This document shows, one piece after another, positions 8,790 through 60,714 of a stretch of 64,000 nucleotides of DNA; the stretch's first letter is position 1, and the number at the start of each line of letters is the position of its first letter. The position numbers and the translations under genes were made by a program. The notes under the pieces are model-generated. The model saw nothing but the letters and a program-made list of their open reading frames with translations. It did not search any database and was not told the DNA's origin. Source of the stretch: Thalia democratica (Eukaryota); NCBI GenBank assembly GCA_965202585.1, contig OZ241827.1, positions 57,908,001 through 57,972,000 on the forward strand, written 5' to 3'.

Positions 8790-9907
8790 AATATTAGTTT
8801 ATAAGATTAGACAATTTGTAAAACTTTTAGTTGTTAAGAGTAGATTAAAATAAAAATTGAGCAATAAATAAATTTAAGTTTTTATACAGTACAAATTAAG
8901 TTTTTTACGTCACGTGATGAAGTTACATGTGACAAACACGTGTTTTATGTGTTGTTCTTAATCTATTTTAATATAAAATATTTTATATGAAAACAGTTTA
9001 TAAAAATTAGTCTTTTATTAAGCTATACTGGCCAGTTTATTTTGTTTTTAAGAGTTTATAATTTTAGTTATGACAAACACGTATAATTTTATTTATATTT
9101 ATTTATATAGCTAAGTTAATCTTAAACGTTGCTAGTACTGGCAAACACTAAACACAAGTACTAACAATTAGTTAATGTTTCATGTATAACAGTATTTTTA
9201 TTTTAGGGAAATATAAAATAAATCATACATAAAACCTTTAATATTAAGCTGTAAAAATATATAAGCAGAAAGTTGTATAACAAATAACTGTTTAGGATAT
9301 AAGCAGTTTATTAGGCAGTGAAATGAAATATAAAAGTAAAAGAAAACTAAATATGATTTGTTTATATCAAAACAGTATGTCAAACAATTTAAAAAAAAAA
9401 TGTTTGTATCTTAAAATCGAAAAGTACTTTTTGATATATGAAACTTTATTTTTTCTAAACTACATAACTATTGAGATTTAAAGCTATTCTAAATAGCTTA
9501 TCGTTTGCTTTAAAGAAAAGACTTTTTCGAAAAACAATTGAAGAAACTAAAAAAAATTAATTTTTATTTTAGCAGCAAACTAAATAAAAAAAACAAGTAT
9601 ATTTATAAATCTAAATTAAATAATTAAATAATTAGGCCTATAATACATTTAAAAACCAAAGGCAGTTTCTATAAACTTTAACAGTTTAACTTTCGTCAGA
9701 AAATAATCTTTGAAATATATTGTTAAAACCTTTAGCAAGTTTTGATACTTTCAGTATACAAAAGGCTTAAAGTGTCATAACTCAAAACTACCATCTACAG
9801 TTTCATGCTATCTAAGTAAAGTAAAGTGAAGTTTAAACAAAATATGCTAACAATATTTTAGGTCAGTCCTGTAGAACTTAAGTAAATTAGAATTATCTAA
9901 ATTTTTC
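8790..9907. repeat. Copy 1 of a diverged direct duplication (ADAMTSL stop, 3' UTR and downstream flank)
   Basis: Colinear similarity with 62170-64000, including 49/50-nt and 34/34-nt blocks. Confidence 0.9.
9307..9312 (-). terminator. Candidate polyadenylation signal AATAAA of the ADAMTSL gene (3' UTR about 600 nt)
   Basis: AATAAA on minus strand, inside a 34-nt block identical between 9291-9324 and 63403-63436. Confidence 0.55.
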
Positions 9908-10137
9908 CCTGCACCCTCACAAGTTTTTCGCTGCAGGGGATTCTGTTGCAGGGGGCGGAAACCTGAGGTCGTTTCGTCGCTAGGCAACGCCCCCTGGCGG
10001 TCTGCTTCGGCCTGCCCTTGTAATAGCAGGCCAGAATTCTGGTTTTTATGCCATGGCTGCCGCAAGTTGCCGAGCAAACGGACCAGGGACTCGGTCTCCA
10101 AACAGGCTGACATCGGATATTTGGGCAGCTTTGTTTT
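9897..10137 (-). CDS. ADAMTSL1/3: ADAMTSL exon 34 (terminal): TSR12 end and TSR13
   Basis: tcaccag|[26 protein letters not shown]...[20 protein letters not shown]. Confidence 0.9.
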
Positions 10138-13100
10138 CTGGTGAAAAATGCATTTCTATAGCATTTTTGGTTATAAAAGTAATGTATTAAGAAGAAAATA
10201 TGTAAATGCAATGAAATAAACTCAAATTGTTTGATAAATTATTTTTAATCATTAATAAATGACGTATTGTTTCTGAAGTTTTATCATTAGAAACTTACTT
10301 TTCTGGTCTCGGCAGGTTTTTGCAGTGGGACTTTTGGACGATTGTGCCGTTGTTAGCCACGCAGTGGACCTGCCTCAATTGAATTCCAATTCCGTTTCCG
10401 TAACACTTCTTGCTACACTGTTAGTTTGTTACTTACGTTTAACAAAAAAGCTATTTAGTTTAGTCGTTGAAAAAAACAGAACATAAAAATGATTTTAGAG
10501 TTTTTTACTGAAACTGTATTAAAATTTAATTTGAGACAGTAGGTGAGTACAATATTTAAAATCCTTCACAAAATCACCGAATCTAACCTGTTTCCATGGT
10601 TTTGGTTTCCACTCAGGGCACGAGTTACTGAAACAGGTTTCTTTTTGTGGCGGAAGTTGCTGGTTGCTACGGCAACTTTCCATGGCAACCTGACGAACAG
10701 TTCCGTCTGACATGAGAACCACACAGGATATTTTCCTAAATCTTGTTCCATTTCCGCAATCAATTGAACATTTGCTCCATTCGTTTGCGTAATACCTTTT
10801 ATAATATATGTTAAAGTTAGTTCGTTTCTAATAAAGTGGCATCAAACGGTTTTGCAGTAATTGTTAAAGACTTTAATATAACAAATATTGATATAATTGC
10901 TGAACACAAAACTTTTGAATTAAGATAAATAAAAAGTTACGCAATAATGTAATGCAATAATTTAAGTGGTTAAAAAAATATATGTAACTACTTCTCTGCA
11001 TCTTGTGAAAAGTCGAAAAGTGGTTGTAAAGTCTAAACTTATATGTAAAAACTTGTAAAAATTAGTTCAAAGACTTTGTTTAAAAAGTAAAAAGGGTTTA
11101 AATGCGCTAAAAGTAAAATAAAAGTCAGATATGAGTAATTAAAAAGTCAGCACTTGACATTAAAGACTAATTATTTCCTGTAAAACTTTTAAATAACATG
11201 TTTGAACTCTAATCCGCCTAATCTAGGTAACAACTTCTATGACCTAAATTCGCTGAAAAACGTAAATATGCTTTTCTAGCTTCTACTTTTATGTTCATAA
11301 ATGTTTTTATAGTTTTGTATTCACAAAGGGCATAATGCAAGCGTACGTAACTTTATACATACATATTTATTGATTTTTTAATTAAACACAAATAAATTGT
11401 TTAGATATTTTATTTAACGACGAAGAAGCGCTAAAAGCTTGGTCTAAGAACCTGGTGTATAAAAATATTTCGGTAATCGAGTCATACAGTTTAATGTTTT
11501 GCCTAAGGCGATTTTTGTTAATTAACTTACAACAACATTAAAGTACTAACTGTGGCGGACAGTCTTTTCTGTTGCAGGACCGGGTTTCAACTTGCGGCTT
11601 GGCCACTCCTTTGCAGTACCAATCGTCCACCGTCCTCACTCCGTCTTCTATGCACAACAGCTTGTCAGTGATGGTTCCCGTGTTCCCGCACTTTGCACTG
11701 CATTCCGTCAACCCCTCCTTTTGGTAATTGTATACTGAAAATAAATAAGAAATTGAGTGCAAGGCAGTTTTTAGGCTATAGTAGTCTTTATAAAAATTTA
11801 ATTTTTCAACCAAAAACTTCATATTTTTTGTTTTATAAAGCTTTTTCAAAAACTTTTAATGTAACAAACAATATGTATGTTTGTCAGTTATTATGAAAAG
11901 TAATATTAACGGTATAAAGCATAAAACAAATGTTTAACAATATCAAAAAAAAAAAAAGTCTTTCAGGTAAATGATAGTAAAAAATACCTTAAAATACAGT
12001 AGATTCATATTCAAAAATATGAAGCTTAAAAGTAAACTTACTGGTAATTTTCAGTTGAAGACTAGCATCTGCCGATCCTGCTGTGTTTGTTCCCTTGCAA
12101 GAGTAATCGCCAACTGAAACGTTGTTGAAGTTGCTGATTGAAAGAACTTTGTTGTTGTGCATCAGTCTGTATTTTGTCGAACTGTTTGTTGTTTCTATGG
12201 CACTTCCTTTGAACATCCATTTTATTGTTAGTTCCGGATACCCAGTCAATGGACAACCTATACGTATCATTAACTAAATTATTCATGTTTATTATTTGTT
12301 TAACAAGTTTAGTCAGTATTGAAACCTACCCATCATAACAGTGGTGTTCGCTTTAACTCTGTAAATTGGATCGTTATAACCGGTTAATAAAAGTTCTGGA
12401 AGTCCATTTATTTCATTTGAGTTTCGAACTACTCCATCATTTGAAATATGAGGCGGGTCTGTTTATTTAATTTAAAAAGTTTTGAATAAAACTTAAAATT
12501 TATTTCGTATAAAAATCAAAATTTATTTATACTCTATTGAACTTCCACTATTACAGTACTACAACAGATAAAATTTTCTACAGGTACTGTACATTCTACA
12601 ATTTATTTAAAGTTACAGTAAATACTCTTAGTAACAAAACTATATAATTGAAACTAGTTAAATGAAAAGAAGAGAAATTTTTTAAACTAAAAAACTTTAT
12701 TTATACCAAATTAACGTTTGATTTCTAATAAATAGATTTGTTGTATAACTTAATTAGAAGTTGCTATTCTAAGTATAAACTAAAACTTTTTTTTTGAAAA
12801 AAAAAAGATCTAGTTTAAATTGTGAAAATAATAAAAATTATACATATTAATGGTTTTACATGACGGTATTTTTTAAGATTTGTTAATAATTACAAGCTTT
12901 GAAGCAGTTAAAATCTATACTCACCGACAATTTCTAGTATAGTTGCTTGGTAAGAGCTACCAAAAGGGTTTGTTGCTAAGCAACTGAAATGTCCCGTGTC
13001 AGCCAAAGTGGTGGGAAATATTTCCAAAGAATTGTCGATTAAAATTTGTGAGTTTCTTTGAAGACCGTTGACGTCTTTGTTCCATTGAACAAATGGTTCT

Positions 13101-16100
13101 GGTGAGCCTGTAATATTTATTTTTAATAAAACATAAAACTTGTCATGAAATAAAACTTTGTCTTTTAGACCTCAAATAAACTTTGAAATGAATCAATGTT
13201 TCTAATGTGTGATTTTATAAAAAACATCATTGTTGAAAACTCAATGTTGCTACACACAATGTACAAACTAGATATAAAATTAATTTTAAACTGCAATAGC
13301 AGCTGCTTTGGGTGTAATTTTCATTATTTTTGACATTATTTACAAAATGAAAACTCGTAAAGTGTATGTAATACAACTTGCATAATTTTTTTAATAAAGA
13401 TAGTCTGGCAGAAATTTTGTAATGCTCTGACTTACTTTCTAAATCCTGCAAGTTTGCGTAATTTAATAACGTTAAAGTATGAATTGAATTATAAAGTACT
13501 TAGTCTGTTTAACAACCAGTAATAAACATTTAAAAAAAGAAAGTTATTATCGAAACTAGCGTTAAAAAATAAGTCTAATGATTTAAGAAAAAAGTCTTAT
13601 GACTTAAAAAAAAAGTGAAAATTTTATAAATTATTAAACTTAATATTTCACTTTACTAACCTCTAGTCGGGCACCTGATAACAACGCGGGCCCCTAATCT
13701 CGCCCTGACATGGGACCCAACTGTCACTGTCAAGTCCATGGACACAAAATCGTCAATATCTCTGGTCGTGGACACAACTGTTGGTTTGTTGGTTACTGAC
13801 AGTGAAACCATTCGGCTGTCGTTTCCCCACTGATTGGTTGCCATGCAAACGTAGTTACCAGCGTCTGACGTTTCGGGGTTGAAAATTCTCAGGGATCCAT
13901 CACCGAGCTTGATCATTCTGTTTTAAGATATAATATTTTCTTTACGTGTTTAACTATGAATGTTTATAAATTAGAATCTATTTAAGGGGTAAACTACTGT
14001 TCAAATTTCGACAACGCTAGTTTTTACAAAAAATGTAAGGGGCCATAACTTCAAAAAATATTTTTAGTTAAAAAAAGGCCAACTTAGTTATAATAACTCT
14101 AATAAATAAAATTATAACTGTGAATAAATTGAATAGTTGATAAGAGAAAAAATTAAATAATAAAAACAAATATATTTTAATAAAATCTAAAGCTGCTTTT
14201 AACCCTATCTCAAAAATGAAATAATAAAACAAATAAAATGTGAATATAGTTCTTATTAATTACATTACGATTATAAAAAATAAAAACCAATCTTCATTAA
14301 TAGATATAGTTTGAAATAACTACAAGTAGTAAGAACTTCAGTTGTCGGAATTTGAATTGTAAGAAATTGAACAGTCGTGCACCCATTTCGAGTAGTGTAA
14401 TAAAAATTTAAACAAGATAACTATGTAACAAATAAATCAAACCTGTCATTATTTCTGATTTCTTGCCCGTCCTTCAACCATTTTACCTCAAAAGGGTATT
14501 CCCCTGTAACCTCGCACAAAATGGTCACCCGTCGCGAACCAACAACCACCACCGACCCTCCGACGTTGACTATGACATCATCATTGTACTGAAGGGGGTC
14601 GATAGTCGGCGCAACGTGGATAGATGGCGCCTTTTTCACACCGTTTTCGTCGGTAGGGGGAGGCGTTGTCGTGACAACCACAGTGGATTGTTTCGAGTCC
14701 AACGGAAGGTGTTTTCGTTCTCTGTAGCCTGAAATTACATTTTAATTTAAGAAACAAAATTAAAGTAAAATGCATGTTTTGTTGAATGTGTTTATAAAAA
14801 CTGACAGAAACTTGATTAGTTTTTCAGATTTTACCAAATTTATTGAGACGGTGAGAGAGTAAGTTTTTTCAAAAGTATAAACAAAAAACTTTATAACTTT
14901 TAATAGTCTAAAAATCTAATAGCATATTTTTTTAAATAACCTAAAAAGTCAGTTTTAGCTGGTACAATATCTTGTAGTTGGACGACTTTGTAATCGTTAA
15001 TTATGTGAGGTTTCTTTCTAATTACCTTCTTGTTCACAGCTTTAGTTCCAGCTGCGAGCTTCAAATGCTGCAAATGTTAAAAGTTGAAACGCGAAGTTGT
15101 GTGTATACATGGAATTTTAATACAATTAACTTGTACAATGGAAGTCGCTCCTATGCTAAGAATTTACTGAACAGATATTTTAACTTATTGGGTCGTGTTG
15201 TTACAAACTTTAAAAATAAAAATTACCCAATGATTTTTGAAATTAAATTAAAATATTTTATTAGTATTTTGATGGAAATGTTTAATAATTCAATGAAGCT
15301 TTTTAAGTTTGTATGTAAATTTTGTAAACGTAAAATGTGACAAACTTTTCTATCGCTGTACTTGGTAATGGATTGTTGAAAAGCTTGACCCCCTTCTTGC
15401 GAGTGGTTCTCTTTGACTTGCATTAAACCTTTATGTGGTCCGCTGGCAGCTCCTAAAGGTTAATTAGATACAAATTTAATGTTAAATTTTTTTAATTAGT
15501 TGCTTTTCATGTTCATACACGCGTTGTCATGCAATGTAAAGCTGTTATACGTAAAGCGACATTATTATTTGCTTTTGAACTACAGCAAACTTTTATAAAG
15601 TTAAGCTTTATCATTATTTTTTGTCAATAATAGCTAAGAAAATTACTATAAAGTTTTTATTTAAGCCAAAAGTTTTAACGCAATGTGAAAACTTTTACAA
15701 CCATAAGTTTTTTTAGACCTTTTGTTGAACTTGTGTTACAAATAAAGATAATTTTTAATGCTTTATTAGTCTACAATGGGTCACGTAATTCATAAACTCA
15801 TTCAAACCATGTTAAATGGATAAATTAAAAAAAAAAAAAACTGGTAATGAATTTTTAAAAACGTTTTTACGAACCCGCTTTAAACAACTCTTTGATTTCA
15901 ATTTACAATGCAGTTCTCATTAAAAACATTGTACATTATATATCAGATTATAAATCACGTTTTTAATTAAAACATTAAGTTTGAGAAATTGCTGTTTGTT
16001 TCAATTGAACACAAAATTACAATTGACGTAATTTATAAACACAAAGATATGTATTCAGAAAATACAAAAGTCAAACTTTGGTTTTTCAAAATCTTTAACT

Positions 16101-19100
16101 TAATTAACTACTCAGTTTTCAAGCTGATTTTATTTTTCACTTATTATAAAACATTTAAACGGCATTAAAACAGATTAAACTTTTAAAGTAACACATTGTT
16201 TAGTAACAAAATTTTGAATTTAAATTAAATTTTACTAACTCAGTCCTAAAACACTACAACAGTCTTAGTTTTTAATTAAACCAGTTAAAATTTTGCTTTT
16301 GGTAATAAGGATTACTTAAAAAAAATAAGTTAAACTTTTGTTGATGAGAACGAGCAGCCTGCTCTTGCCCTGTCCTCCCTGGCACTTCACCATCTGCCTC
16401 CTCCTCATCCTGATCTTGCACATCTTCAGGTTGCCCCTCTTCGTCACCATCACCTTCCCCTGCCTTCTCTTCACCCTTCGCTTGTTTACGAACCACGCGT
16501 ATTTTGATGGCGCACCGCTGAGTAAAAATAGTACTAATTAGCTAGAAAAAAATACATATAAGATCACCGCAATGTAAAAATAGCCTTAATTAGCTTCAAA
16601 AGGAAGAATGATGTCCGAAAATATCGCCTATTAACCAAACATTACAAAAATTTCACTACAATATTCATTATATTATAGCGATATGTGATTGTTTGAAGCC
16701 AAAATAGCAAAAGTAAACTGCAAATATATGTTTATTTTTCATTGTAAAACTAGGCCACCGTCTAAAGTTTTTGAGCAAACAGGACGCGAAATTTCCTCTG
16801 ATTGATGTCACCTTGTTTGCTCACTTGCCATCAAATGAGCAAATAAAGCGGCAGATAATCAAAGCTAACTGCCTTCATCGTTCTCTCCCACTTGCCGATA
16901 AGTAAACATTATTTTGTAGCGCATTGACCTTGCACGTGACGGTGTTTATTGTTTGCATTAAAACTTACTTTTTGAAGCTGCACTTGGCGATGATGGTGGT
17001 TCCAGGGATGACGAAGGCCTTCAGCGGAAGGGTCAGTTGGAGGGGGTTTTTTCTGGCCGATTTTTGCACGAATACTCTCAGCCCTCCGTTGATTTTGGTC
17101 GGGTTGGGCCTTCTTTTAATCACGCTTTTCCCTTCTTGATTCGCAGCTACAAAATATTTAAATAGAACATTATACAAATTACTCAGACGTTAAAAGAAAT
17201 TAACTACTTTTAAATTTAACACATAGTTGACTCACCCAAGCTGGACATACATTTCCTGTGCAGTGAGCAACTCCTTCTGGCTGGAAGTGCTTTCAAGTTT
17301 TTGCAGTATTTCAATTTCGCACTAGTTTTGTGCCAATTTCCGTTTTTCATGTACATGCAGACAACTTTTCTTGTTTGCCAACCTTTTTGTAACTTATTGC
17401 AGTCGCCTTTGCACTAAAAGAAGAGTTTAGCTGTACATTTTTGAATTTTTAACAGTCAGTAACAAAGTAAATTACAGATAAATAATGTTATTTATGAGTT
17501 TTAGTAATAAAATACCTTTTAGTTAAGTTTTCATTTAAAACATTTTAAAAACTGTTTAAATTGTTGCTAAATATGTCAATTTATGAAAAGATACTAATTA
17601 AACTTAAAACCACAAACTTCACTCCAATCTTCTGCAGTGAATTTCGGTTCACATTCTTTAACTTTGCACTTTCTCCTGGTCAATCGATACGGTTTGTTCT
17701 GCGAACAATATTTTGAAGGCACCTGAATCAATTTGCCTGTTCCTATTCTTTGTTTGCACAAAAAAGAAATTTCACGAAACCCGTTGCCGCATTGTTCAGA
17801 ACACTAAAAAAGTTGTTTTTAATGAAAAAGTATTCGTTAAAGTAGATGACTAGGCTCAATTACTAGGCTAAGCTCAATGAATGGTCTTAAGCTTATAAAA
17901 TTGTTAAATGTTTAAACCTTGCTTAAATTGGTGTAATAATCTATGAACAAAAAACTTACTATCATGAATATATTTTGGTATGTCAATAGGTTTTTTAAAA
18001 CTAACCTTCCCGAGACCAGACTTCATCCAGACAGGGGGACAGGTAGCGAACCCGCAAGGTTCAATCGACTGAGGTTTTGGGTTGGGGCACATGATTTCAG
18101 GCATGACGTCATCGTTGGTGACGTGGTGAGTGGAGTTTTCAGGCATGAACTTACACGTGACAGATCTTTTTCTGATCCCTCTGCCGCACATTTTCGAACA
18201 CGAACCGTACTGACCTATTTCCCATCTGAAAATTTTTTGGAATATTTTTAATTTTTTTTAAGTTTTCGCTATTAATTTAATGTAAAGATAAGGAGAGCCT
18301 ATCGAAAATACTAAAAAATATTTTAAATCAACCTACATTTTTCTTCTACTTAGTAAAAATGTTACCGGAAAGGCTATGTTTTATACTGTCAGAGTTTTTA
18401 AAGAAACTAGTATAATACATAGTTGGTTAAAAATAAAACTCTATAAGTTAGCTTTTTTTTGTCTAATTTTCTAATCAAGTTTAAATATATCATTATAGTT
18501 ATGTTTAGACAAAAGAAAAAAACCTACTATGTATAAACATACCAATACAGAAGTCGTTATTTTAATTCGGCTAAATGGGTAAAACAATATAGTAAAACAG
18601 CAAAATTTAATGATATAAAAATATACTTAGAACAGGTAAACTTGGTCTAAAATTATTAAAAACTTTATTACACTATCTATTGGCTTTTCTTTGTAGCTTA
18701 TGCAAATTTTTAGTTTTAAATAATTAATTTTAAAGTTCAATGAGTTTATACTAAACAAACATTTAAAAGTTTACTGAAATTAATCTTCTATATAAACAAG
18801 TTGTTAAGTGTGTTTTTTCTCATGTACTAATTTACTGGTTATTATTATTTTTTGCTCTACTAAAGACTTGAAATTTTTATATCAAGCGCATAACCTTTCT
18901 CATTTAGAACATGAGGCTTAAATGATATCACAGTAAAACGTTTTCATTTGATATTATAAAAACCTTGTAGAAATTATGTTTTCATTAGGTACAACATAAC
19001 TATTTTTAAACTGTTTAGTTATGACAACTTTAAAAACTATTAAGAATTGCTTCTTAAAGGTACTTACCTAATTGGGATATTTTGACAGGGTCCAATAGCA

Positions 19101-22100
19101 ACTAAAAATACTGCTAAGTAACAATAATAAGTACTTAAAAAGATTATGTTTGTTTTATACATAACATTCCGAAACTGTTAAATATAAGTAAAGTTAGTTT
19201 GTTTTATTTTCAACTAAAACTTTGATTTGAAGTAAAAAAAATTGAAATAAGTTAAAAATTTGAATGGTAATATGAGTTGAATAGTAGTTAGAAAACAACT
19301 TCTAATAATGGTTTTTATTTTAAACGTTTAAAAGTATCAAGCTGTATTATAGTGCGATAAAAAAGTAAAAATAATCAAAAACTTTTAAAAAAATTGCTTT
19401 AAATTATAAAATACGAACTTAAAATACAAACCAAAACAAACAAATTTGTTTTTAGTAAAAAAAAACATATTTCTGATCTTGTTATCAACAAACTTAACAG
19501 TATTTAGTGTAAATATTATTTTTGTGTTTTTTTTCAGCTATAGCTTCTTTGTTTACAATCTTTATATAGACTGACTGCAACTTTTACTGCAGAAAGCTTA
19601 AGTTAAAGTTTTCATAAAATTTACCTTATATACTGAAATTGAATTGAGATCATAATATGAATATGCTTTCGTGTCTATACAATTTTATAAACACATTCAA
19701 AACAAAATTTTATTGTCTTTAGTCTCGCGTAAACAGCTTACACCACTATGTTCATGTAGTTGTCATTGAAAAATGTATAAAGAAGATTTTCATTAAAAAA
19801 CGCGACAAAGCTTTGAAAAGGTCAGTTGAAAATATTATGAAATATGAGTAAGTTTTTCTAATTAAAAAGTATTCATATTTAATTTTCAAACTATTTACAC
19901 GAAATTGTAATGTTGACAGAAAACAAAAACATTGTCGAAAACAATATGTTATTAAATCTGTCTGTCATAAACTTCAGCTTTAAAACAAATTGCTTCATCT
20001 TAAGTATGGTTCAAAGGGTAAATGCTATTATTAGACCTGAATCTATAAACTTGATTCAAAAACTTAAAAGAAAAAGTAGTTACTAAAAAAAATCTCTGAT
20101 GAAGTTTCAACTTTTCAAGATTTTCTTTTATATCTTGGAAACAAAAACAACTAAACTATTAGTATAATAAGCAGTGAAAATTTTATTTCTTAAATATGAA
20201 TACACAAATTACGTTTACATTATACTAAATAGTCTTTTTTAAAGAACAAATTACCTACGAGAACTGTTTGGTAAATTTTCTATCTTTTTAATTTGTACAA
20301 ATAAATGTCTTCTTTAATATTTTTATTTCTGTAATCACTAACTCAGTTTAACCAAGTGCAGTACTTAAGTAGTCTCTGATTTAAAAATTCTGTAATAAAA
20401 CTTTGTGCATCAAAATATTTCTGCAACATAATCTTACAACTTTATACACTTCGATTTGCTAACTAAGTGTGCGCCAACTGAACGTTCAAGCGAAACAAAA
20501 AACATATTTATTGCTGTTTGAAAACGCTGCAAACGCTTTCACCTTTTTCTGTGTCAAAAATCCAAAACAAACACGAGTTGAATGGCGAAGAACAAACGAT
20601 TATAATAAATATTTGCTTTTATTCGTTATAATTCTCCACAATCACTTGTTTTTATTTGCACTTTTACTCACTTCCGAACTACACAACTTCACTACCTACG
20701 ATTAAAACTTTCGAAACTTTTCACAAGTTTCTATACACGGGTAATTCTGCGTAGAATCACAAGCACAGGGCTGTTTGAACAGCGAAGCCGTCTTGACTGG
20801 GCTTAATGCCGGAAACGCGTTTTGTTTGGTTAGGAAAGTGCGCATTTGGTGTCGTAAATGTGCCTTTTATTTTTGTTTGGAAAATTCGACCGGTCGCATT
20901 TATATGTTCATGAAGCGTTTGTTGTATACGCTTTTCAATATGTAAAAGAAATTTACCTACAAAAAGAAATTTTATGTGTAGAATGTAAATGCTCTGCTCA
21001 TGAAAGAAGCTATATTTATACTTTGGAAATGTCATACAATTATAAAATTTTTTTTAAGCGCTAGTATTAGAGAATTTCTCAGAAAGATTAAAAAGTTAAA
21101 AAACTGTTTGAGAAAATTTATAGTAAAATCATATATTTTTTCTCAATTATGCTTCCTAATAAATATTGTTTATAGTTTTAACCGACTTTTGTATACTGAA
21201 TGCAAAGAAATACAATTAAACCGTAGTAACATCAATTTAGTAAAATCATGTTTTATCATCAACAATTCGGTTTACTTCATTCTTTCTCCTGGCCGTTTCT
21301 GCACAGCAGTTTTAAAACTTTCAGAACCGTAGAGCGCATTAAAGTACTAGCGAGCGCAGCCGACCGCATCGAGTTGTGAAATCAACAACTCTCACGTCGA
21401 TTCGCATGAGCGGTCACCGGCGCAAACACAAAGTGGTGGGGATTTTCTCTCGATGGTGTCAGAACAGCGTCTCGTCGGTTGTTTAAACCGCGCTTATTCG
21501 TTGCACTAGAGTGATGGATCACATCGGCATAAATACATCATACCGTTTCCTATACAAACGAAATCGACCTTATATGCCACAATGCAGTTGTAATACTGGC
21601 GTTCATAAACAGTATCCTGCGTGTGACAGTTTAGTGATAAACAAACTGTATTTGTAATAACTTAATGAATGGCACTTTGTTGCTGAGTTTGAAACGGATA
21701 AGAGCGTCGTTGCTAGCGATTTAAATGTGAATAAAAATTGTTTTTATCCAAATCTCTGGTTTTTGTTATTTTAAAAAGCAATTAAAATTCAATTGTTAAT
21801 GAAAAACTTGCACGACGATTTATCATTATCAGTGATATAAATATTTCTAATACTATATAACAGTGCGGTAACCATCTTTTTGGAAATTTCAATTATTTTT
21901 CTAGTATAATTTCGTATAGAAGTAAACATCTTAAAAATTTTTTTTTTTACTTTTAAATATATCACACTTGCAAAAAATTTAATTTCTAAGCTTAGAAATT
22001 TAGCTGTGAACAAAGATATTAATTAAAAAAATATTTTTTTCCCTAGAAAATGCGAAAAAAAACTGAAAAAAATTCTATTAATTATAAACAATTGACATTA

Positions 22101-25100
22101 TTTGATCTAATAACTAAACAATTGAAAATCTGAATAAATTATTATAAAAAATTACTTCAAACCAATCCCTAACTATCAAGATAAACTTTTTTAAAGTAAC
22201 TTGTTTTTAGTTCTAGGTATTTAAAATATTATGGATACTGATAAAGCTTCTTAAACTTGAATTTAAATAACTGTTGTTTACTTAGTTTTTTAGCCTTACT
22301 TATAAGCTTTAAAATAAACTAAAATATCTACTTTAAATAACAAAGAAAAACAAAGAAATATTTCTAGCTTTTTAACCGGACTTAAAAATACCTCAAAAAC
22401 CTATTAACTTCCAATTACCTAAATCTTTTAAAAACCTAATCTAGTCTTTGCAGCGACTTAAAGAAATCTGAACACAAATTAATCGAGCTTGTGTCTTTTG
22501 TCGAGTAGCTACTGTTAACACACAGCGTAGCCATCGCACTATTGTGCTACAACAGAGCCTGCGACAAAAACAAAAAAGAAAAAAGGTTTTTGTGTGTCGG
22601 GGTGGTCGTAGTACAACAAATTGTTGAAGTGGCACAGAAGTGCAACTCGTTGTTTTTTCATGACAAAAGACCACCAATGAGTTTTTATACGAACTTGTTT
22701 GTATTATTGCCGCAACAAGATTAATTTACTACGAGTTGGTCTATGACGTAACTTTTTAAAATTTTAGGGAGAATTGAGACTTTTGTTCGGTTTTTTTCGC
22801 ACAAAAAAGACGCTTATTTTTCAGTTTTATTTTACTATATTTATATATTTAATTATAAACTTTACATAATGTTAGCATTGTAATGATGATGACTGCTTTC
22901 TAAATTTGGAATTGTCGAACCAAGGTGCTTTTGATCAAAAAGAGAAGATCTTAATTAAATCCGCTTTTCATGCTAGTAATAAAAATTTGTAACAACTAAA
23001 AGCCTCGTAAAAACACAAAAAATATATTTACAAATGCAAGATTGTTTAGCTGAAAACTTCAGTGTATTAGCAGCACAATGCGTTATAGGATTAATGTCGT
23101 TTTAAAACTACATAAATACAAATTTTCATAAGATCTGACACCGGGCCAAATTAAAGTTGTGCCGACGAACAAAGCTGAAAACCTCAAAATTTAATAACCA
23201 AGTTGAAACTTTCGCGTTATTACTAAACCCTTAAACTATCATTTTTGTTTTCGCTTGGGCTTTTAGCGTTATTAACTTGTAACTTTCTGTTATTTTCTGA
23301 AGTTTGCAAAGATATTTAGTGCTAATTTTGATACAAAACCGTATTACTATAAAATCTTGATAAAGTTGTTTTAAGATAAATGCTTTAATAATTGTTGGCA
23401 GTTTTTTTGCTGTTATTTTGTAATCGGACTTTTACTTAGTCTCCATATTATAGTAAGATATTTAAAAATACACAACGTTCTTTTTGTTAAAAAAAAAATT
23501 ATCAACAAACTTTGGTGATTAAAGAATTAACATTTAAATAAAATAGTGTTTAAAAAGCATTACCAAAAGTGATAAAAGCATTAAAAAAATTAAAAAGTAA
23601 TAATCAATTAATGTTTATATTTAGAAGATCTGTATCAACTTTTAGCTTTGAGATAACTTGAAAAATAAGTTATATTGTTAATCTCACATTTCATTATATA
23701 GTGAAATAGCTTACACAATCACATTACATAATCTTTTATTATCCAACGATGTTTTTTGTCAAACACAATTAATACTCGTTTAGGGTTGTAAAATAATGTT
23801 GTTTCATCTCATAAACATTACTTTTATTAAACAAAATAATATTTAAACTCCTAAAAACTTCAAAGGAAGGTTTTTTAACGACTATTAAACAAAAACCTCA
23901 AGTTTTTATTTCATTAAAAAAACACTTGTCAAAAAAATAATTTATCTTTGATCTTTGATAAAAAATAAACATACTATTAGCGAACAACTAAATAACATTT
24001 TAAAACAAACTTGATATTTTATAGCTCTTTGTAAACTGAGACTTTTTTTTATAAAAATTGTATCGAAAAAAAAAATGTAGTATTTCATTCTAGACATTAC
24101 AAAATATAGTACCTTATAACTTCATAATAATCAAGTTTTAAGCTATGAATCATAGTCTACAATCAATTTAGGGTCTATTAACAGCATGATATTTTTATCT
24201 AGAACTATTTAAAGTTTAAATGATTTATTGTAACTTAAAGGCTTATCTTTAACTTATTTTTGAAAGCTGTTTTTGTTACTAATATGAAAAGTTTTTACAC
24301 TTAGTTTTACTTAACAACATAATTAATGCTAGCCTTTTGTTTGTAGAAGTCCTTTTGAACTGTTAACAGACAAAATGCAATTAAAAACTAATAAATTATC
24401 TTGACAGTTATAACAAAACAAATAGTACTAATCTAGTTTTGCTTAGTGACAAAATTTTTTTATTATTTAAAATAAAAGTTTGTACATTAATGAATAAGCA
24501 AACACAAAATTTTCACAATAACTATTTTCAAACCGTGTAATTTTAACTTCAAATATGTTTTTTAGGAAACAAATTTTCTTGCACATTAACCAACAGTGAA
24601 AATTTACTTACTTTATTATAACATCATAGATTAATATAATTTATTTTTGTATTATTAGACTCATTAAGAAAGTTAAATATAATATTTTAGACTAATTAAG
24701 TAAAAACAAATTAAAATTACTACAAAAAGATCACGTAAGCATATTAAAAGATTTAAAATCTTCATCAAAGTAAAATCACAAAGTTATCTCAACAATTTAG
24801 CTCTCAAAAATTTCCCCATCTTATTTTGCGTTACTTTCAACCGTTCATATCTTTTATGATATTTTTAAATCAAACTTTGTAATTGATAGATGTCAATTAT
24901 AGGAACGTGTTAATTTGATTATAACACTCTACCGTGCAAAGCTAATAGATGATATCGACGAGTGTTTAAGTGTTAAATGATAGAGATTATCAAAAGGCAA
25001 AAACACATAAGAAACGCTGTGCGAAGGCCAAGTAACCTGCTTTAAAAGGTTTTTTTTTATGCAAATATTTACATTTGACTATATGTTTGCAACTATTTGT

Positions 25101-28100
25101 AGTTAAAGATCGCTCAGGTAATGCAATCACAAAAAAAAAATTGCTCGTTGTTATTATTAATTTTTTGTTGCAGTTTGTTTATCCATTTTTTTTAAATATA
25201 ATTGTCTCAATTAAGTGTTATAAAAGCAGTCTATATTCAAAACTTTCTATGAATCGACCAACCTAAGTTTTAGATAATAAATAAGCAAAAAAACAATCAG
25301 ACTTTTTTCATGATATATTTCAACTATAAGTTTAATAACAGTTTTTTGTGTTAAAAATTTATTTATTTTTTAAATGTTTTTTAAACTAGTCTTAAATTTA
25401 CTGTTTTGTAACACCATTAACGATAATTTTTTGTAATTATTTTTTTCAAGCAACATCAAATTATTTACAAATCGGTCATATTTTTTTCTTATTTATAAAA
25501 TATTTCTTAAAGTATTTCTTTTTGATAGTACAAACAATAATTAATAAAAACCAAATATATTTTTATCTTAAAAAAACAGCAAACTAACTGGGCTCTGACT
25601 TCACGCGATGCCTCGTTCACCAGTTCAACATACCTCCTTTTATTATTAAGCGGGAAAATACTTTCTAATGGAAGCCTTGTACCTGCATTCCCGCTTTCAA
25701 CCCCCGAGCCGTTTGATTGCGGCTTGTTGGCCGTGGAACAATCGCCGGTCGGTTGCCAAGAAACGGCGGCGACAATAAGGTTGCCGTGGAGACGCGGTTC
25801 GAGCGAAATGACAAAAACGATGACAAATTTGTATAATAAAAATATGCTGCTACTTCTAGCTGCTGACATTGTTTTCAACTTTTTGATATCATCTGACTAC
25901 TTGAACAATTACTCGGTGCTCTGCTTTGCTGGAGTTCTGCCTCATAATTTGTTGATAAGCATGCTCGTATACTTTTTTACATACAACAAGGTTTTAATCG
26001 CTGAAATGGTGATTTTGATTGATGAAAATTAATTAACAACCAGTTGGGCAGAGTCCAAGTTTTTATGCTATTTTTTAATTATGTTACTCTTACTAATAAG
26101 TTTGATAAAGCAGGAAGCTAATGAGATTAAAAATGACTACAATGTAATTCTTTTTTTATTGACGTCTGGTCGGTAATATGCGATGGAAAATTAATTAATT
26201 GTTCTTGTGTACCTTGCTTCGGGATCGGTTTTAATAAGTGCAAATTTTCACATTGTGTAATGTACGCTGTCATAGCTATTGGTGTGTCAGCAGTTATTTA
26301 GTTTGTACGTGAAGCTATAAGTTATACTAAGATTTACAAAAAAGTTTTATTGCAAGTAAAGTTTGTATACAAAACAGGTAAATCAATTTACTTTTAAACT
26401 GTAGTCCAACATACTTAAAACAATAAATAACAATTTAAGTCATTCTAGGTAAAAAAAGTCTAAGTTAATAAAAAAGCTACCTAAAACATATTACACTATT
26501 AATTTCATTTTTTGTCTTTCTGCTTTTTAGTTTTTAAAAAGTTAAAATCCGAAAAATACACAACCTAATAGAAAACTTTTACTGGTATTGTGATTTAACT
26601 TTTTTGATAGTTTGACTAATTTAAATTCGTTCTAAAGTAATTATATGGAAAGTTTCTAAACTAATCTTTATTAACCAAAGTTTAATAAACAAAATAATGT
26701 TAAAACAATACTATTTTTGTCAGCACTATAAAAACATGTTACAGTCCCTAAATTCCACCACATTCTGAAACAAACTTAAAAACAAAAATGCAAGTTCTTA
26801 GCTTGTAAGCAGAGAAAAAATTGTTTTACTCAAACATTTTCTAGTCTTACTCTGCTCTTACACAAGTTCCTATGCAAAGCCTTACATACTCAAAATAATT
26901 TGTAAGCAACGAAGTTCTAACCTTTTTTCTTTACATGGAAAGTTATCTCATGTTCGCTATTTACCTGTACTACAAATGCTGTTATTTTCTACAATTTTTC
27001 GTCTAAAACAATTGATGTAGTTTCATAAAGTTTTAATCATGTTGTTGAACTATAAAGAAGCTTTTGTTTACAAAATACTTCTGTGTAATGTTTTTAGAAG
27101 TAATCTATGTACATAGCTGTTTTAGTTTTATATAAAAGTTATCAAACTAAATAAGTAGTTTATACACGAAAGTCGTTCGAATATGTCACTAAAGTCCGTT
27201 GCTTTAATATTTTAAATGTTAAAATAAAAGTATTAAGCACTTACTATAAAACGATTGGCGTTTTAACGTTTTTAATTTTTTTTTTGTTTTGTTAAAAAGT
27301 TTTAAAAAGTTGTAAAAAGTTTAAGTTGTCAAATTATCTACAGTATAACTAAAAATAACAGTGTTCCTTTGATGTTATTTTTGTAACAAGTATTTTTTAA
27401 ATCAACTAAAAAACATTTCTGTTAATTGGATATTTTGTATCGAAATGCTTAAAGTTCAACATTAAGCCTCTTTTTAAAGATTTAAAAAGCGATTATAGTT
27501 TATAACTATTAAAATTTGTAAAGTAATTCAAAGTTGATTTAAAATATTAAAAATTTTAAGTGTCAAAATTAACAGAAAAGCAGCAAAAAATTGAATATAA
27601 ACTTTAAATGTATTTTAGGTCGCCTTCAGAACATCACTGAAAGCTTTTCAAATCTTATCAGCTGACTCAAGTTAAAGTAGTTACAAAAGAAACCCTTTTT
27701 CCCTGCTGTTTGGCGATCAAAAGATATCTAAATTGCCTACATAAAAGGTATCGTTTTGAGGCATGAATACATTGAGGTGCAACACTTCAAAGGGTGCTTG
27801 GGAAAAGTTTTGAGTGATTGAGTTTTACCAGTTTTGCACTCCTCTTAGCGTTGACAGCTTCTTACGTATTAGATCCGCTCGATAAGAGTCTCTGAAGGAG
27901 CGAGATAAAATCTCAACAGCATCAATCATAAGAGTTAAAAGTTCTGATCAAAGAAACTATATTCAAGCATACTAATGTTTATATTTTACCAAGCTTAGAA
28001 ATTAGTAAACTTATAATACAAGTTGCGTACTAACTATAAATATTTTTAGCAATACTTGTTCAATAATCTTTATAAGCTTCGTTTTACACTTTTTTCATCA

Positions 28101-31100
28101 ATTTACGAGCTTAGCCGAATACAATATTTGTTTGAAATTTTGATAAATACCAACGAGTTTTTCAAACTAAAGGTATTTCAACTTGATTTCACATGGTTTA
28201 TTCTCTTTATTTAAGTTTTGAGTTACCATTTTAAAAAATATTTGTGTTGCTTTTCCCTTGTCTATTATCGATTCAATTGCGTTTCACTTGACTTAGTTTG
28301 ATCGTAATGAAGGCTAATTCAATTTTAGTATAGTTAAGAGTGATACATGATACCTGAATACTATTACTTAAGCAGTGCGCGTTGAAAACAGGCCAATTAC
28401 ACGGCTCTTTTGTTCCCATCAGAACACTTCAACAAGGAATTGTGTCATATTTTACCTATTTTCTCTTTTTGACAAGCTCAAGTAGAAGACCTTACTTACA
28501 TTTCTCATGCAGTTTTGATTCACAAAATAGAAAAACTGCAACCAAATAGACTAAAGCAAATTAAAAAAAGTTACCTGGTTTCGTTTTCAGTCTTGAGTAG
28601 AAGGGGACAGGGGTCCCTCTTGCAGGTGGCCAGCTTCGGAAGGGGATGTTTCGATCGGTCGCATCTGCTGTCTGCTGCCAGGCGATTTGTGAGGTTGTCG
28701 TAGCAGAACGGTATCGACACCGACATTCCTGTGGAAATATGATAAGTACAATACTTTCTTTTTGATAAAACTGTTATAACTGTTTTTACTTAGATGTAAT
28801 TTAAACACTATTTTAAACTCTAATATTTGCATATATAATATCTAAACTTTTTTTACGGTCCAATGAATGCTCGCAGAAAAACACAACTTTCGTAATTCAT
28901 TGTTTACAAACAAAAACTTTTAATAATGCTGTAAATTTTGATAAAACTTTCAATGTTGAAGTAAAACTGTGTTGACAGTGTCAATTCACCGTCATTACTA
29001 GCATACTTTCACGGCTTGAAAACAGGTTATGGGCTTCATCCTTTTAAAGTCGGATCAAAGCCGCGATGTGTTTGCAACCCGATACGATAAAGGTATTTTT
29101 GCAGGTGCCGGCCCAACAACAAACAGGTGCCAGCGTATCGAGTTGTGCCGAAATTTCGAATTATCCGCTCGTAATTGCCTCGCTCCATGCCGCCAACAAC
29201 GCCAATTTGTCCGAACGACAAACGTTTTCGAATACCTGCAAATCCCTTTTCGCCCGCTTTAAGCCCTCGCTTAAACTAAGGTTTTAATTTCACATTGCTG
29301 GAGCAGTGTTCGTCTGAAATTAAGCTAAAGTGCAAACGTTAAAGTGGACAATTTGGTATCTGGACACGCAAACTTGGGTACAGACAAAAGGTAATGGCGT
29401 GCAGAAAAAGTGCTAATTGTATAATTTGTCGGCTGTTAGAAAAAATTCTGGCTTTTTGCCTTTTTTTACACGAAATGGCGCAATAAACTTTATTTTACGT
29501 TATAAATAAAAATATTATTTAAATGTCTTATAGTAGTTTTCATTGTGCATTTAAATTTACGTAATAGCAAAGTATATTTATATTTAAATTAAAGATTTAA
29601 AACTAACGTCTATCATAAGGTTAAATAAAAATTATACTTTTTATAGAATAACAAATAGTATGTTTAGGATAGAAATATTTTTAGCAATTAAAACTATTAA
29701 AAGATGCGTTACTTTTTTTCTGTTAAAACAACTTAAACAGTAATTTTTTTCCATATCATATAAATTAAATTTTGGTAGTAAAACGTTTTAGAGATTACAA
29801 GTATTTACTTGTAGCAAAATGTTATACACGGATTTCTGATCAAATAAGTATTGAAGAAAAGTTTCTAGGTAAATAAAATATGCTACAAAGCTAACTTAGT
29901 TTAAGGTTATCTCAACACGTAAAAATTTACTAAGTAGAAAAAAAATGTTACATCCATAAAAATAAATAACTAATTTATCATCGTTTTTAATTATTTTTAA
30001 AATTTATCTTAAAAGTAAATTTATGGAGACTAATTAAGCTATTAATGTAAAATATTCCAAAATCCTTTTTTAATTAGTGATAAAAATTAACAAGCTAAGC
30101 TGTATGCTACGCATCGATTTTATTAAATTATAATTTTGTTATATACATAATTTGATGATTAACGATTGAAATAAACTCAAGATCAAACAATTTTTTTTGC
30201 CTAGTTATCTCAATTACTAAACAGATTTATAAAATGTAAACATCATACCATAAGCTAATTTTAAGTAGTTTAAACACTTGTTTTATTTTAAACTAAAAAA
30301 AATATAAAAAACAAAAGTTAACAGTGTTACACATTTACATATTGAAGAGAGATTGTTAGAATACAATTTTATTAGTTTCTTATCAATCATAATTAATAAA
30401 AGTGTGAACTGTTTAGGTATAATTAATTTACGCTTTTTGAAGTTGAATTGTGATAAACACAAGTAACCAACTACTATACTGTGTATATACTTACAATATA
30501 CCTACTTGTATATTTTTTTTGTTACAATATAAACATTTTAAAGAAAATTTATTAATTAATTCTTATCTTAGGATTATTAATCTTAAACATTTTTTCGACA
30601 ATTAATACATAAAGTTTTTTATTGTCGACTACTCTTTCAAAATATTCCTATTTTATTTGTGTTTATAAAAAATATACACATGTTGTCATACTTTTACTTC
30701 TTGTTTTCTTTTTGTTTGTTATAAATTAACAGTTGTTATTGTTTTTTATAAAAAACACAGAAAGAAATATTTAAAAAAAATTATTTGGTGCCGATAAGAA
30801 TTTTTCGCATTTAATAAGAATTAGGAAAGATTTAAGTTTTAGGTCAATTTAAAATAATAAAGTATATTTAATCTGTGAAAGCTTACAGACGATTACTGAT
30901 GAATATTTTAACTAGTAACACGCGTAGCTTGCACGCGAACAATACTAAAACATTTTTATATTTTACTCATTACATTTTACAAAACACCAACCACAGAATA
31001 CAATAACAATTTTAAAGTTGTAGATAGTATACATAGACAAAATATGAAAAAATACAGTAATAAAACAACAATAGTCATATGTTTACTACCTTTTTAAATA

Positions 31101-34100
31101 TATGCAAATTTTTAGAACAAACTTAGATAAGTAGTATTTGAAACTGGTAAATCTGTGTATTTAAAACTTAAGAACTTTATTATTCTCACCAAATCCACAA
31201 GTGACGCTACAGCTTGTCCACTTGACAAATCTCCACACAAACTCCTCCTTGACAACCACCACCTCCTTATCGATCACCCTGACAACCTATATCGGCGACC
31301 CCATCGCCTCGTTCACCCGCCGATACGTGTCGAAGGGGCACAAACCCAAAAAGCATTTCTGCAAGTATTAACATTGTACAACTTTTCTTTTGTAAATAAA
31401 TTTCAATGATTGTTTAGATATAAAACAAAAAAAAAACTTAACAATTAATAAAAAAATTTTCACTAAAAAACTAATTTTCAAGTAAAGCTTCGAGTAAAGC
31501 AGTAATTCAGTCAAATTTAGACATTAGCTAGCATTAAAGTCATCTTTAAAATAAACATTTGAGAGGTTTGAGCGAAGTCCCTTTTCGGCTTTGTGATGTT
31601 TGTAAAATCTTCTCGTTTAAAAACCGGTCTTACACAAACTACAAAGCCGACAATCTCCGAAGCAAACATTACAAATTTCCTTTCGTTTGTTTAATCAAGA
31701 GGTCACAACCCAACTACAACACGAAATAAACATTTGGGGTATCGGCTCTTATCGCAACAGATAATCCAAAGTCAAACTCGGATGGCTTTAAAAATTCAAT
31801 TTAACTAGTTAGTGCTGCCGTTTAATAATGGGAAAATTTTGTTGCAAAAATTTTTTTGTTATCACTTTGTTGCCAAACAAGATTAAAATCTTTAAAAAGA
31901 ATTTCTAGTGTTTGCAAAGGTAAGTTTATGAGTTTATCTGATATATTACTCGATAAAATAAACAAAATACTCAGTGCTTTTTAGATTTAAATTTTTCTTT
32001 AAATCCTAAACTTTAGTTTACATGCTATCTTTTTAAATTGTGTATATTTAATATTGTAACAACTTATTAAGTTTAAAAATGAAAAACGATAACTAAAAAG
32101 AAAATACTTTTAAATTAGCAAAATAAAACGTAACAAAACAAAATTAAAATTTTAAATCTATAGAGTTTTAAAACAAATACTAAAACAAGTTGTAAATCAA
32201 AATAATCATAATTCGAGAAAAAAAAAAAACTGGCTCAAATATATAAAATAAGAAAAACTAACAGTAATGATTTGAACTAATTGTTAATTATATTCTTGTG
32301 AATACACTACTTTTACTAACAGTACCTTTTTTCTTAAAAACTATTTACCGCATTCTCATCCCTGATACTTTAGTTTTCAATATTTTCTTTTAAAGTCGCC
32401 ACTAGATTTTCAATATCATAAGCAATCACAAAAACTTAACCTACTCAATTCTTTTCTAATCAAACGCAAACCTCGGTGTGAACGGGAGCCGGTCCCCTGC
32501 ACCTTGGTTCGCTCTTGTACAATTCCTCCTCTTTAGTGATCCCCTCCTCCACGCATTCCACCCTCCTCGTTCTGAATCCTCCCATCCCGCAAGATTTCGA
32601 ACATGCGCTCCACTTCCTCGCCTTCCATCTGTTTTGATAAAGCTGTTTGCTAGTATAATTGTGTAAAGTGTTTAGTAACAAAGTTATGGTTTGGCATCAG
32701 CAAAAGTGCTGAGGTTTTTCGTCTCTAGAACAGACTTAAGTTAAGAAATTTTGATAGAATTTGTTTCTATTAAAAAAAAAATATCTTTAATAAAACACAG
32801 TTTATAATGAGTCTTACGAGTTAATTAGTTTTACTTTTGAACAATAAAATAGTCTATTTAAAAATAACTTCAATCATTTTATTTCAAAATATATTCAAAG
32901 ATTTATCTACTTAGTAAAACTAAAGTAACTTTAAAACTTACTTGGCAACTGGAGTGAACTTCACAACAGTTGACGGTTTTTTTTGTTTTCTTTTCTTTGA
33001 TTTTGTTTTCTGTTGTATTTTCCTGCCGTTCTTACCTGGAAAAAAAATTATTGTATTTGCTGTAGTAGAAAAGATTAATCATGTCAGTTTCAAATATACT
33101 TTTTAGTTGTCTCAAAAACTAACAACAACTTAGCTTTTTACAATAACCATAATAAGGTATCACTGAAAGAAAGCTAAAAACCGTATTTATCACATTTTCC
33201 ACTCAATTAAGTAAACTTTACATCCGCAATATTACGTCATATAAACAAAGTTAACTATTAAGCTTTGTTACTTACAGCTAATTGAATGCCTAGAGTTTTT
33301 TATACTTAAAGTAACGTTTATATATTTTAAGTGTATATTTAACTACCAGAATTTATATTGAAAACATAATATTTATTATTTTCAAAATATTATATTAATT
33401 GAAATGATAGACAAATCGAAATTATGATAAAGTTTTATGACTCATCGAGTCTGTAAACATGTTTCAAAAAGCATAATTTTACGAAATTCTAGAAGTTATT
33501 TACTCTTCTTGCAGACTTTGTTGCACTCCATTACAATGTTGGGTTGTCGTCTTGTGTCACAAATTATTGTAGGAGTCGCTCTGTTGTCGCATATGATGTA
33601 CCTGTTTCGGAATCCACTACCGCAACTAACACTACACTGTTCATTTAGTTAAACATATTAGATAATAAAGCTGGATCTGTGTCTATAGAGTAATTACAAA
33701 AAGTTTTGTGGTTATTCAAGACCATCTTATTGAATACAATTGAAGTACCCAATAAATATGTTTTTTAATAAAAGTGTCTTTTTCTTCAATAGTATTGAAA
33801 ATAATATTAAGCTGATAACTTTTTTCAATATATTTTATTTGGAAATTTTTTCAAGCTTTGTTATCCTTAAAACTATTTGTTGCAAAAAATACAAGATCAA
33901 CTTACATCGGACCAGTTTCCAACGATCCACTTCGGGCACTCGAACGTGTTGCACGCTTCAATGCTTTCCGGCTTCACAAAGTTCCCGCACTCCGACTCGT
34001 CCTCATGGATCCTGATCACATCTCCGTTGTACTTCTCCTCAACGCACCTGATCGTCCTCTGCAGCGTCCCGTTCCCGCAACTCACGCTGCAAGCTCCCTT

Positions 34101-60463: not shown

Positions 60464-60714
60464 CTATTTTATCTCTCTTTTTATGCAGATTGCTTCTGCT
60501 GTGTTGTTCAATGTACCGTTGTCCAAACACTCATACACGTATTCAACTTTACTGTCATAAAACACAAAATTGCTGTTGCATTTTATTCGCACAAATTTTC
60601 CAGGCAAACGATTACCAGGGGGTGTTAGTGATCTAAAACTTCTACTGAACCGTCTATTACATTTAGCAAATGGAATTTTGTAAAATATCATGAAACTTAA
60701 AGCATGTGTAATTA
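60464..60714 (-). CDS. Second Sushi/CCP-like exon, probably terminal
   Basis: KCNRRF...GKFVRIKCNSNFVF...YECLDNGTLNNTAEAICIKREIK-TAG; four Cys in CCP spacing; AATAAA at 60444-60439; 5' boundary uncertain. Confidence 0.6.

Follow-up and report, generated by a model that had tools for sequence, protein, structure and literature searches.

The 64-kb stretch analyzed here (hereafter the window; positions 57908001-57972000 of contig C2 in an 802-Mb assembly of Thalia democratica) carries on its minus strand a gene of the ADAMTS-like (ADAMTSL) type, and the 10.3-kb intron 18 of this gene (18226-28574) holds an alternative first exon that RNA contigs join in frame to exon 19. ADAMTS-type thrombospondin repeats (TSRs) were recognized by the Pfam family TSP1_ADAMTS on 10 exon pieces. 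The part of the gene specific to the long form includes a TSP_1 match at 42737-42874 (E 8.7e-07), an ADAMTS_CR_3 match at 38907-39434 (E 7.1e-05), and further TSRs. The cysteine-rich and putative spacer modules occupy 38.9-41.5 kb, a position 5' to the alternative exon and hence outside the short form; a spacer-family match was absent in the exon pieces scanned with Pfam, among which the spacer exons were not delimited. The window lacks the motif HExxHxxGxxH in all of its minus-strand frames, and this motif test also gave no protease-like open frame at 42.9-62 kb. A PLAC domain was also not found: a TSR is immediately followed by the end of the open reading frame (ORF) at 9897, the same stop is present in two paralogues, and no Cys-rich frame was seen further 3'. 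Judged by its predicted domains, the gene is ADAMTS-like and of the punctin type, with TSR1 and a cysteine-rich module, no catalytic part, and immunoglobulin (Ig) domains between TSR blocks, the PLAC domain being the missing element. A candidate for exon 1 of the long form was noted at about 51859-51990 (minus strand, 41% G+C), where a signal-peptide-like start, MTRVASIYTKTHHCCYCLLLLLVSASLL, is encoded.

Intron 18 splits a codon after its second base, as exon 18 ends in GAA ACC AG/gtaact at 28575/28574 and exon 19 begins with ttttcag/A TGG GAA ATA GGT at 18225 (slashes within sequences mark exon or cleavage borders). The frame of the alternative exon is opened by an ATG at 25869 with an A at -3, it encodes the hydrophobic core FVIVFVISL, and an in-frame TAG is located 10 codons upstream, at 25899-25897. 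The G+C content of the exon is 48%, versus an average of 27% in the host intron. Counting both strands, the window contains 1,742 ATGs; frames of at least 78 codons follow 18 of these, and only the one at 25869 encodes a strongly hydrophobic 9-mer near its start; with a mean Kyte-Doolittle value of 3.36, this 9-mer has the top hydropathy among the long ATG-opened frames of the 64 kb. The ORF at 25869 is more than a product of chance.

An earlier reading of the window, made from its letters only (the original prediction), had described this exon as 78 codons long, ending at a donor AG/GTATGT at 25634/25633. The ATG, the hydrophobic core, the upstream in-frame stop, and that donor are all present in the sequence, and the donor is of phase 2 like that of exon 18 and fits exon 19, but the true donor in RNA, GCC CA/GTTAGT at 25589/25588, is 45 nucleotides further 3'. 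The frame remains open over the 15 additional codons, the coding part of the exon (25869-25589) thereby comprises 93 codons plus 2 bases and again ends in phase 2, and the protein across the RNA junction reads REVRAQ/WEIGQYGSC. The GTATGT site was rejected as a real donor, being private to the window copy and absent from RNA: at 25631 the seven other paralogues have GTCTGT or TTCTGT, and a C was found in all 4 RNA runs. The GTTAGT donor, on the other hand, is invariant in all eight copies and also occurs in two contigs of relatives, L010 and L019. If the GTATGT donor were used in the window copy, it would give an in-frame form 15 amino acids shorter.

The RNA data consisted of contigs from 4 marine metatranscriptome runs of one study, representing at most 3 samples, which were aligned to 23000-28899 (5.9 kb). 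The stretch 25600-26000 was also found in 4 runs that have no library description and are labelled with two coded organisms. As anticipated by the original prediction, the alternative exon is covered by transcripts: RNA contigs extend over 25589-25965 and are joined in frame to exon 19. The main RNA contigs within the interval were confined to this part and to exon 18 (28575-28729). Other contigs in the intron were scattered, short, mostly of low depth, and in several cases mismatched, with a few 31-nucleotide records of high depth near 27293-27322. The near-silence of the rest of the intron thus serves as a built-in control and argues against a carry-over of DNA.

In the contigs of runs X1 and X2, position 25589 continues into the reverse complement of ATGGGAAATAGGTCAGTACGGTTCGTGTTC, which corresponds to 18225-18196 of the window, the first 30 bases of exon 19. 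A contig of run X3 has the same 25589/18225 junction with a shorter loose end and carries variants of a second lineage (L010-like, 94.7% identical). Splicing onto 18225 was therefore observed as predicted, but from an exon end at 25589 and not at 25634. At exon 18, the loose end at 28575 matched the start of exon 19, and the loose end at 28729 matched the end of exon 17 at 31191. The junction of exon 18 to exon 19 and that of the alternative exon to exon 19 were both present in the same samples and runs. The alternative exon is transcribed and spliced in frame to exon 19. A plus-strand gene was considered and rejected: a 163-amino-acid antisense open frame at 25541-26029 overlaps the exon and has no Pfam match, and since the RNA junction shows GT..AG on the minus strand, the strand is settled against this longer antisense frame. 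Coordinates of all features are given in Table 1.

Table 1. Features of the alternative first exon and of the surrounding ADAMTS-like gene, in window coordinates.
Feature	Position	Strand	Basis
Conserved upstream block; candidate core plus proximal promoter for the short isoform	25990..26202	-	Conservation; promoter role suggested by position and content
TATA-like box TATGTAAAAAAG	25972..25983	-	Sequence; RNA contigs end about 18-35 nt downstream; putative
5' untranslated part of the alternative exon, as far as RNA contigs reach	25870..25965	-	Contigs X1 25709-25965 and X3 25786-25948
Predicted signal peptide, codons 1-29	25783..25869	-	Hydropathy, conserved core; cleavage site predicted by the -3/-1 rule
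Alternative first exon, coding portion (93 codons + 2 bases, phase 2)	25589..25869	-	RNA contigs, paralogues, relatives
GT of the donor used in RNA (CCA/GTTAGT)	25587..25588	-	Junction in contigs of runs X1, X2, X3
GT of the originally predicted donor (AG/GTATGT)	25632..25633	-	In phase; private to the window copy; not seen in RNA
Short-transcript intron (7,363 nt, GT..AG)	18226..25588	-	RNA junction
Exon 19, first shared exon (TSR)	18006..18225	-	Pfam TSP1_ADAMTS, E 1.6e-10; RNA junctions with exon 18 and with the alternative exon
Remaining shared exons: 2 TSR, 4 Ig-like (3 Pfam-supported), 4 TSR; stop 9899-9897	9897..18005	-	Pfam; some small exons doubtful
Exon 18, last long-form-specific exon	28575..28728	-	RNA contigs 28575-28729
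In-frame TAG in exon 17, long form	31287..31289	-	Frame from the RNA-supported exon 17/18 junction; private to the window copy

Downstream of the junction, Pfam matches included TSP1_ADAMTS on three exons, I-set on three units (14424-14741 with 13659-13922; 12911-13171; 11992-12273), and TSP1_ADAMTS on four C-terminal units, while a fourth Ig-like unit, very basic and located at 17146-16336, had no Pfam match. A frame-consistent exon chain obtained by dynamic programming from 18225 to the stop at 9897 encodes 968 amino acids. This chain skipped a half-exon of 129 nucleotides (12330-12458, minus strand; acceptor aaacag/, donor G/GTAGGT) whose product, the fourth Ig domain's first half (../CPLTGYP), adds 43 amino acids; as 129 is divisible by three, the half-exon is easily missed. 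The chain also included a doubtful exon of 33 nucleotides at 11451-11419. Because of these two exons, the protein length is given as a range: the original prediction of about 1078 amino acids, with a signal peptide, three TSRs, four Ig domains, and four TSRs, keeps its layout, with the fourth Ig domain probable, and comes close in length, but the estimate is now about 1,090-1,105 amino acids. The shared downstream exons are open and collinear with those of two paralogues.

Paralogues of the alternative exon were found in eight copies including the window, with amino-acid identities of 87-100%; seven of these fall inside a 460-kb stretch of C2 and occur in both orientations, and the eighth is on contig C761. 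No indels occurred in the exon among the eight paralogues, and the frame was open in seven of them, the copy L006 having a stop at codon 2. Nine copies of exon 19 were found on C2. The copies belong to a tandem and inverted ADAMTSL array extending over C2:57.68-58.15 Mb and C761. For two of the exon-19 copies, at C2:57865165 (plus strand) and C2:57896805 (minus strand), a partner alternative exon was not detected, and these may be partial duplicates.

An equivalent exon had been expected in relatives, and three Tara metagenome contigs (P0001, P0005, and P0002) indeed keep both the ATG and the ORF. Marine metagenome contigs of relatives with the same exon and the block upstream of it include L009 (ENA ERZ17083582) and L010 (a Tara PRJEB4352 contig). 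In L009, the most divergent of the relatives' contigs, the exon could not be aligned over its 3' third, and AGA AA/GTTGGC is a candidate for a phase-2 donor. Indels between the lineages were +3, +6, and -3 in the confidently aligned coding part, and those in the untranslated region (UTR) were not multiples of three. The encoded N-terminus resembles a signal peptide in composition, with a basic n-region of 14 residues, the h-region FVIVFVISL, and a polar c-region EPRLHG that places Gly at -1 and Leu at -3. According to the -3/-1 rule, the predicted signal peptide is likely cut after Gly29. In P0002, which is 68% identical overall, the hydrophobic core and the residues RLHGN are unchanged, and the n-region and the linker differ. 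The hydrophobic core and a block of 210 nucleotides upstream of the exon are the best-kept parts in the most distant relative, where the DNA of the h-region is 91% identical.

The upstream block (25990-26202) is 86% identical to L009 without indels, compared to 44% for the 5' UTR, 40% for the n-region, 36% for the 3' third of the exon, and 46% for the intron. These are aligned identities; an ungapped distance for the 100 nucleotides upstream of the ATG was disregarded, as it was inflated by indel shifts. Among the eight paralogues, the block is 86-97% identical. It contains three copies of TAATTA, one TAATCT, and the sequences ATCAATCA and GCTTCCTG, which we take to be Pbx/Hox-like and ETS-like sites, respectively. 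The block had no RNA coverage in the 4 RNA runs. A structured RNA or small RNA gene was rejected as the cause of its conservation, as no Rfam family, no tRNA, and no stable fold (z 0.26) were found. Between the block and the exon is the TATA-like TATGTAAAAAAG, to which TTATAAAAG is aligned in L009. The RNA contigs that reach 25965 and 25948 are genome-matched to their ends, with no joint and no loose 5' end, although assembled contigs cannot show transcript starts or ends. Stops are present in all three frames between 26000 and 25870, and thus the alternative ORF cannot be read into from an upstream exon. The conserved block, the TATA-like box, the contig ends, and the stops are best read together as a putative promoter inside the intron.

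The best-supported explanation of these observations, and one that we consider probable, is an internal promoter that produces a secreted short isoform. A promoter within intron 18 would drive the alternative first exon, with transcription starting near 25950-25965, downstream of the TATA-like box and of the block of about 210 nucleotides rich in homeodomain-type sites. Translation would begin at the exon's own ATG and yield a signal peptide of 29 residues followed by a linker of about 64 residues, and the donor CCA/GTTAGT would be spliced to exon 19 in phase 2. The resulting isoform of about 1,090-1,105 amino acids would be secreted and consist of the signal peptide, three TSRs, four Ig domains, and four TSRs, and it would lack three parts of the long form: its N-terminal TSR1, the cysteine-rich/spacer module of ADAMTS type, and the first block of TSRs. 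In this scheme the transcription start, the cleavage and secretion of the product, and any cell-type-specific role like that of MADD-4B, the nematode punctin's short form, are the inferred parts.

Several observations weigh against this explanation, and the first of them concern the identity of the transcribed copy. The RNA contigs carry the letters of the family consensus at 25631, 25658, and 25844, and the 30-nucleotide tag of exon 19 is common to five copies. The consensus letters and the shared tag together establish expression for the gene family or a very close sequence, and not strictly for the window copy. A decaying window copy, with the RNA derived from paralogues or from a wild-type allele, would make the design true of the family and not necessarily of this locus. 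The TAG in exon 17 that is unique to the window copy would fit such decay, as would the changes at 25631 and 25658, where the window is the odd one out among the copies. However, over 25589-25774 these two private positions are the only differences between the window and the X1 and X2 contigs, so that the X2 contig closely matches the window. Additionally, the ATG, the ORF, the conserved donor, and the promoter block of the window copy are intact, its downstream exons are all open and collinear with those of paralogues, and the nonsense codon of exon 17 is outside the short transcript. A relic at this locus is accordingly held to be somewhat unlikely, though it is the most serious of the alternatives.

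A further point against the internal promoter is an acceptor-like ttcAG/ at 26001/26000, just outside the RNA-covered part. Together with its pyrimidine run, this site is conserved in relatives, and it raises the alternative of a cassette or poison exon, reached from exon 18 by way of an acceptor located upstream of 25965 (e.g., 26001/26000). The stops in every frame ahead of the ATG would then end the translation of a long transcript that includes the exon, leading to unproductive splicing and nonsense-mediated decay (NMD), and the contigs, for the reason given above, do not prove a start. However, no contig joins exon 18 to the alternative exon, exon 19 is the sole continuation listed for exon 18 at 28575, and no RNA covers 25966-26000. 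The 210-nucleotide block, conserved above the level of the coding sequence, and the TATA-like box located 18-35 nucleotides before the contig ends also fit a promoter better, and a poison exon needs no conserved ATG, ORF, hydrophobic core, or in-frame indels. We therefore regard a cassette exon as improbable.

The case for a coding exon is weakened by three AUGs upstream of the main start, each opening a short ORF (25962, 6 codons; 25945, 18 codons; 25892, 5 codons). The ratio pN/pS (non-synonymous to synonymous polymorphism) among the paralogues is 0.71 overall and 0.98 in codons 1-30, versus 0.08 for exon 19 (nine copies). The spliced protein with the alternative N-terminus was not found by HMMER against 1.84 billion representatives or by a word-based search; both matched only three unspliced genomic ORFs of marine metagenomes, a weak blank, as exon-sized queries limit the lengths that can be detected. 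If the upstream ORFs blocked the ATG at 25869, or if the hydrophobic stretch were not a working signal peptide, the exon would be a non-coding 5' exon whose RNA is regulatory or yields no secreted protein. Such a reading would draw on the three upstream AUGs, one of them with a conserved start, on the pN/pS near 1 in codons 1-30, and on the ease with which AT-rich genomes encode runs of Phe, Ile, and Leu. The use of the ratio of non-synonymous to synonymous change (dN/dS) as a proof of coding was itself rejected as uninformative, as many replacements occur across this young gene family, and several bona fide downstream exons have as many non-synonymous as synonymous differences, or more. Set against a non-coding exon are the A at -3, the ORF, the in-frame indels, and the identical hydrophobic core kept in a relative only 68% identical overall, as well as the exact phase fit to exon 19 of what is the only such ORF in 64 kb. 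TSR and Ig domains require the secretory pathway, and a TSR/Ig protein lacking a signal peptide would have no function, which makes an accidental fit unlikely. A non-coding role for the exon was consequently given little chance of being right. The AUGs at 25892-25962 may act in translational control. The start of the upstream ORF at 25945, which begins with ATGAGGCAG, is kept in relatives, and in L009 this ORF has 14 codons and a stop about 25-35 nucleotides before the main ATG.

The hydrophobic core is also short, with 9 residues after Lys14, which counts against a secreted product. A short h-region that follows several basic residues (R5 and K14, with R or K at position 9 in paralogues) could form an uncleaved signal anchor, by which the short form would be tethered to the membrane as a type II protein. 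Nine hydrophobic residues are nevertheless too few for a bilayer, and the polar c-region with a Pro, the small residue at -1 (EPRLHG/N), and the RLHGN kept in the relative fit a cleaved signal peptide. A membrane anchor is thus the least probable of the alternatives and would be very surprising.

The TAG in exon 17 (31289-31287) is located in a linker between two TSRs, and all seven paralogues have a serine codon, TCG or TCT, at this position. The window copy has further private changes: three codons after the TAG it reads GAT where GAG is expected, at 25631 it has GTATGT in place of GTCTGT, and at 25658 ATT in place of AGT. All four private changes seen are G:C to T:A transversions. Based on the comparison of the copies, the TAG is best described as one of three things: a recent nonsense change, an allele, or an error. 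Only the long form would be truncated by it, the long transcript being a likely target of NMD and the short transcript remaining untouched. The original prediction had combined this stop with the internal exon into a locus design for non-overlapping N- and C-terminal halves; with the TAG private to one copy, this idea was not upheld, and it is formally possible for the window copy only.

The known system closest in design is madd-4 of Caenorhabditis elegans, where long (A/C) and short (B/S) isoforms with different synaptic roles are produced from alternative promoters (PMC11385328, PMC13142758, PMC9083331). The short form of MADD-4 is the C-terminal moiety, with 7 TSP1 repeats, an Ig domain, and PLAC, and without the cysteine-rich and spacer modules (PMC11385328, PMC13142758, PMC9083331). 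The madd-4B promoter is controlled by the homeodomain factor UNC-30/PITX through a TAATCC site, and ADAMTSL1 (punctin-1) and ADAMTSL3 (punctin-2) have been named as the vertebrate orthologues of madd-4 (PMC11385328). The Thalia gene likewise encodes a predicted ADAMTS-like secreted protein with a short C-terminal form that lacks the cysteine-rich/spacer part, and both short forms have 7 TSRs. The abundance of TAAT-core sites in the Thalia upstream block recalls the UNC-30/PITX site of the madd-4B promoter, which is a resemblance only. In contrast, the domain orders differ, with three TSRs, four Ig domains, four TSRs, and no PLAC in Thalia versus TSP4-7, one Ig domain, TSP8-10, and PLAC in MADD-4S. 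The Thalia gene also has more TSRs in its long-specific part and is a member of a tandem array of at least 8 copies. The proposal of a design equivalent to MADD-4B thus gains from the transcribed exon, the in-frame splice, the signal-peptide-like start, and the short form without the cysteine-rich module, but the equivalence is by analogy only and does not extend to the domain layout. As far as RNA and sequence show, the locus would work like the long/short design of madd-4.

Among other ADAMTS-like proteins, vertebrate ADAMTSL1 and ADAMTSL3 have TSR1, a cysteine-rich module, a spacer, and numerous TSRs, with several Ig repeats placed between the TSR blocks. They differ from the Thalia gene in the PLAC domain at their end. 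A limited literature search found no description of an internal promoter with its own signal-peptide exon in ADAMTSL1 or ADAMTSL3. Papilin resembles the Thalia gene in its ADAMTS-like N-terminal cassette, many TSRs, and Ig domains. However, papilin carries Kunitz domains, and none was found in the Thalia exon pieces scanned with Pfam.

Punctin/MADD-4 is among the few secreted synapse organisers for which the choice of isoform, set by promoters, fixes the identity of postsynaptic domains, a logic so far elucidated in C. elegans alone. With its RNA-supported internal start exon and a sharply conserved putative promoter block, the punctin-type gene of an unrelated marine animal offers a second system in which to ask whether the long/short split is general and by which transcription factors the internal promoter is read. 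As to annotation, at least two proteins would be encoded by these loci, and the true donor would be mis-called from the sequence of the window copy alone. A broader and rather speculative extension, which we rate as unlikely, is that the long/short punctin design, with an internal promoter rich in homeodomain sites and a signal-peptide exon of its own, is an old shared feature of punctin-type ADAMTSL genes, with the eight copies dividing labour and the window copy becoming short-isoform-only. The latter would follow from the long form being cut by the TAG in exon 17 while the internal promoter, the start exon, and the C-terminal exons are intact. If this extension were true, the long/short split would be no speciality of nematodes.

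A second G+C-rich island (21290-21600, 48% G+C) was observed elsewhere in intron 18, at a distance of 4.3 kb on the 3' side of the alternative exon. The island occurs only in the eight paralogous introns, with identities of 91-95%, and is thus not a dispersed repeat. No Rfam or tRNA match and no obvious in-phase ORF with a donor were found in the island, which may represent an enhancer or one more exon. Open frames on the minus strand at 60467-61008 resemble Sushi/CCP domains by eye (..YTCSDGFLMV..VRC; ..KCNSNFVFYD..YECLDNGT..) and probably belong to another gene, located upstream of the ADAMTSL gene.

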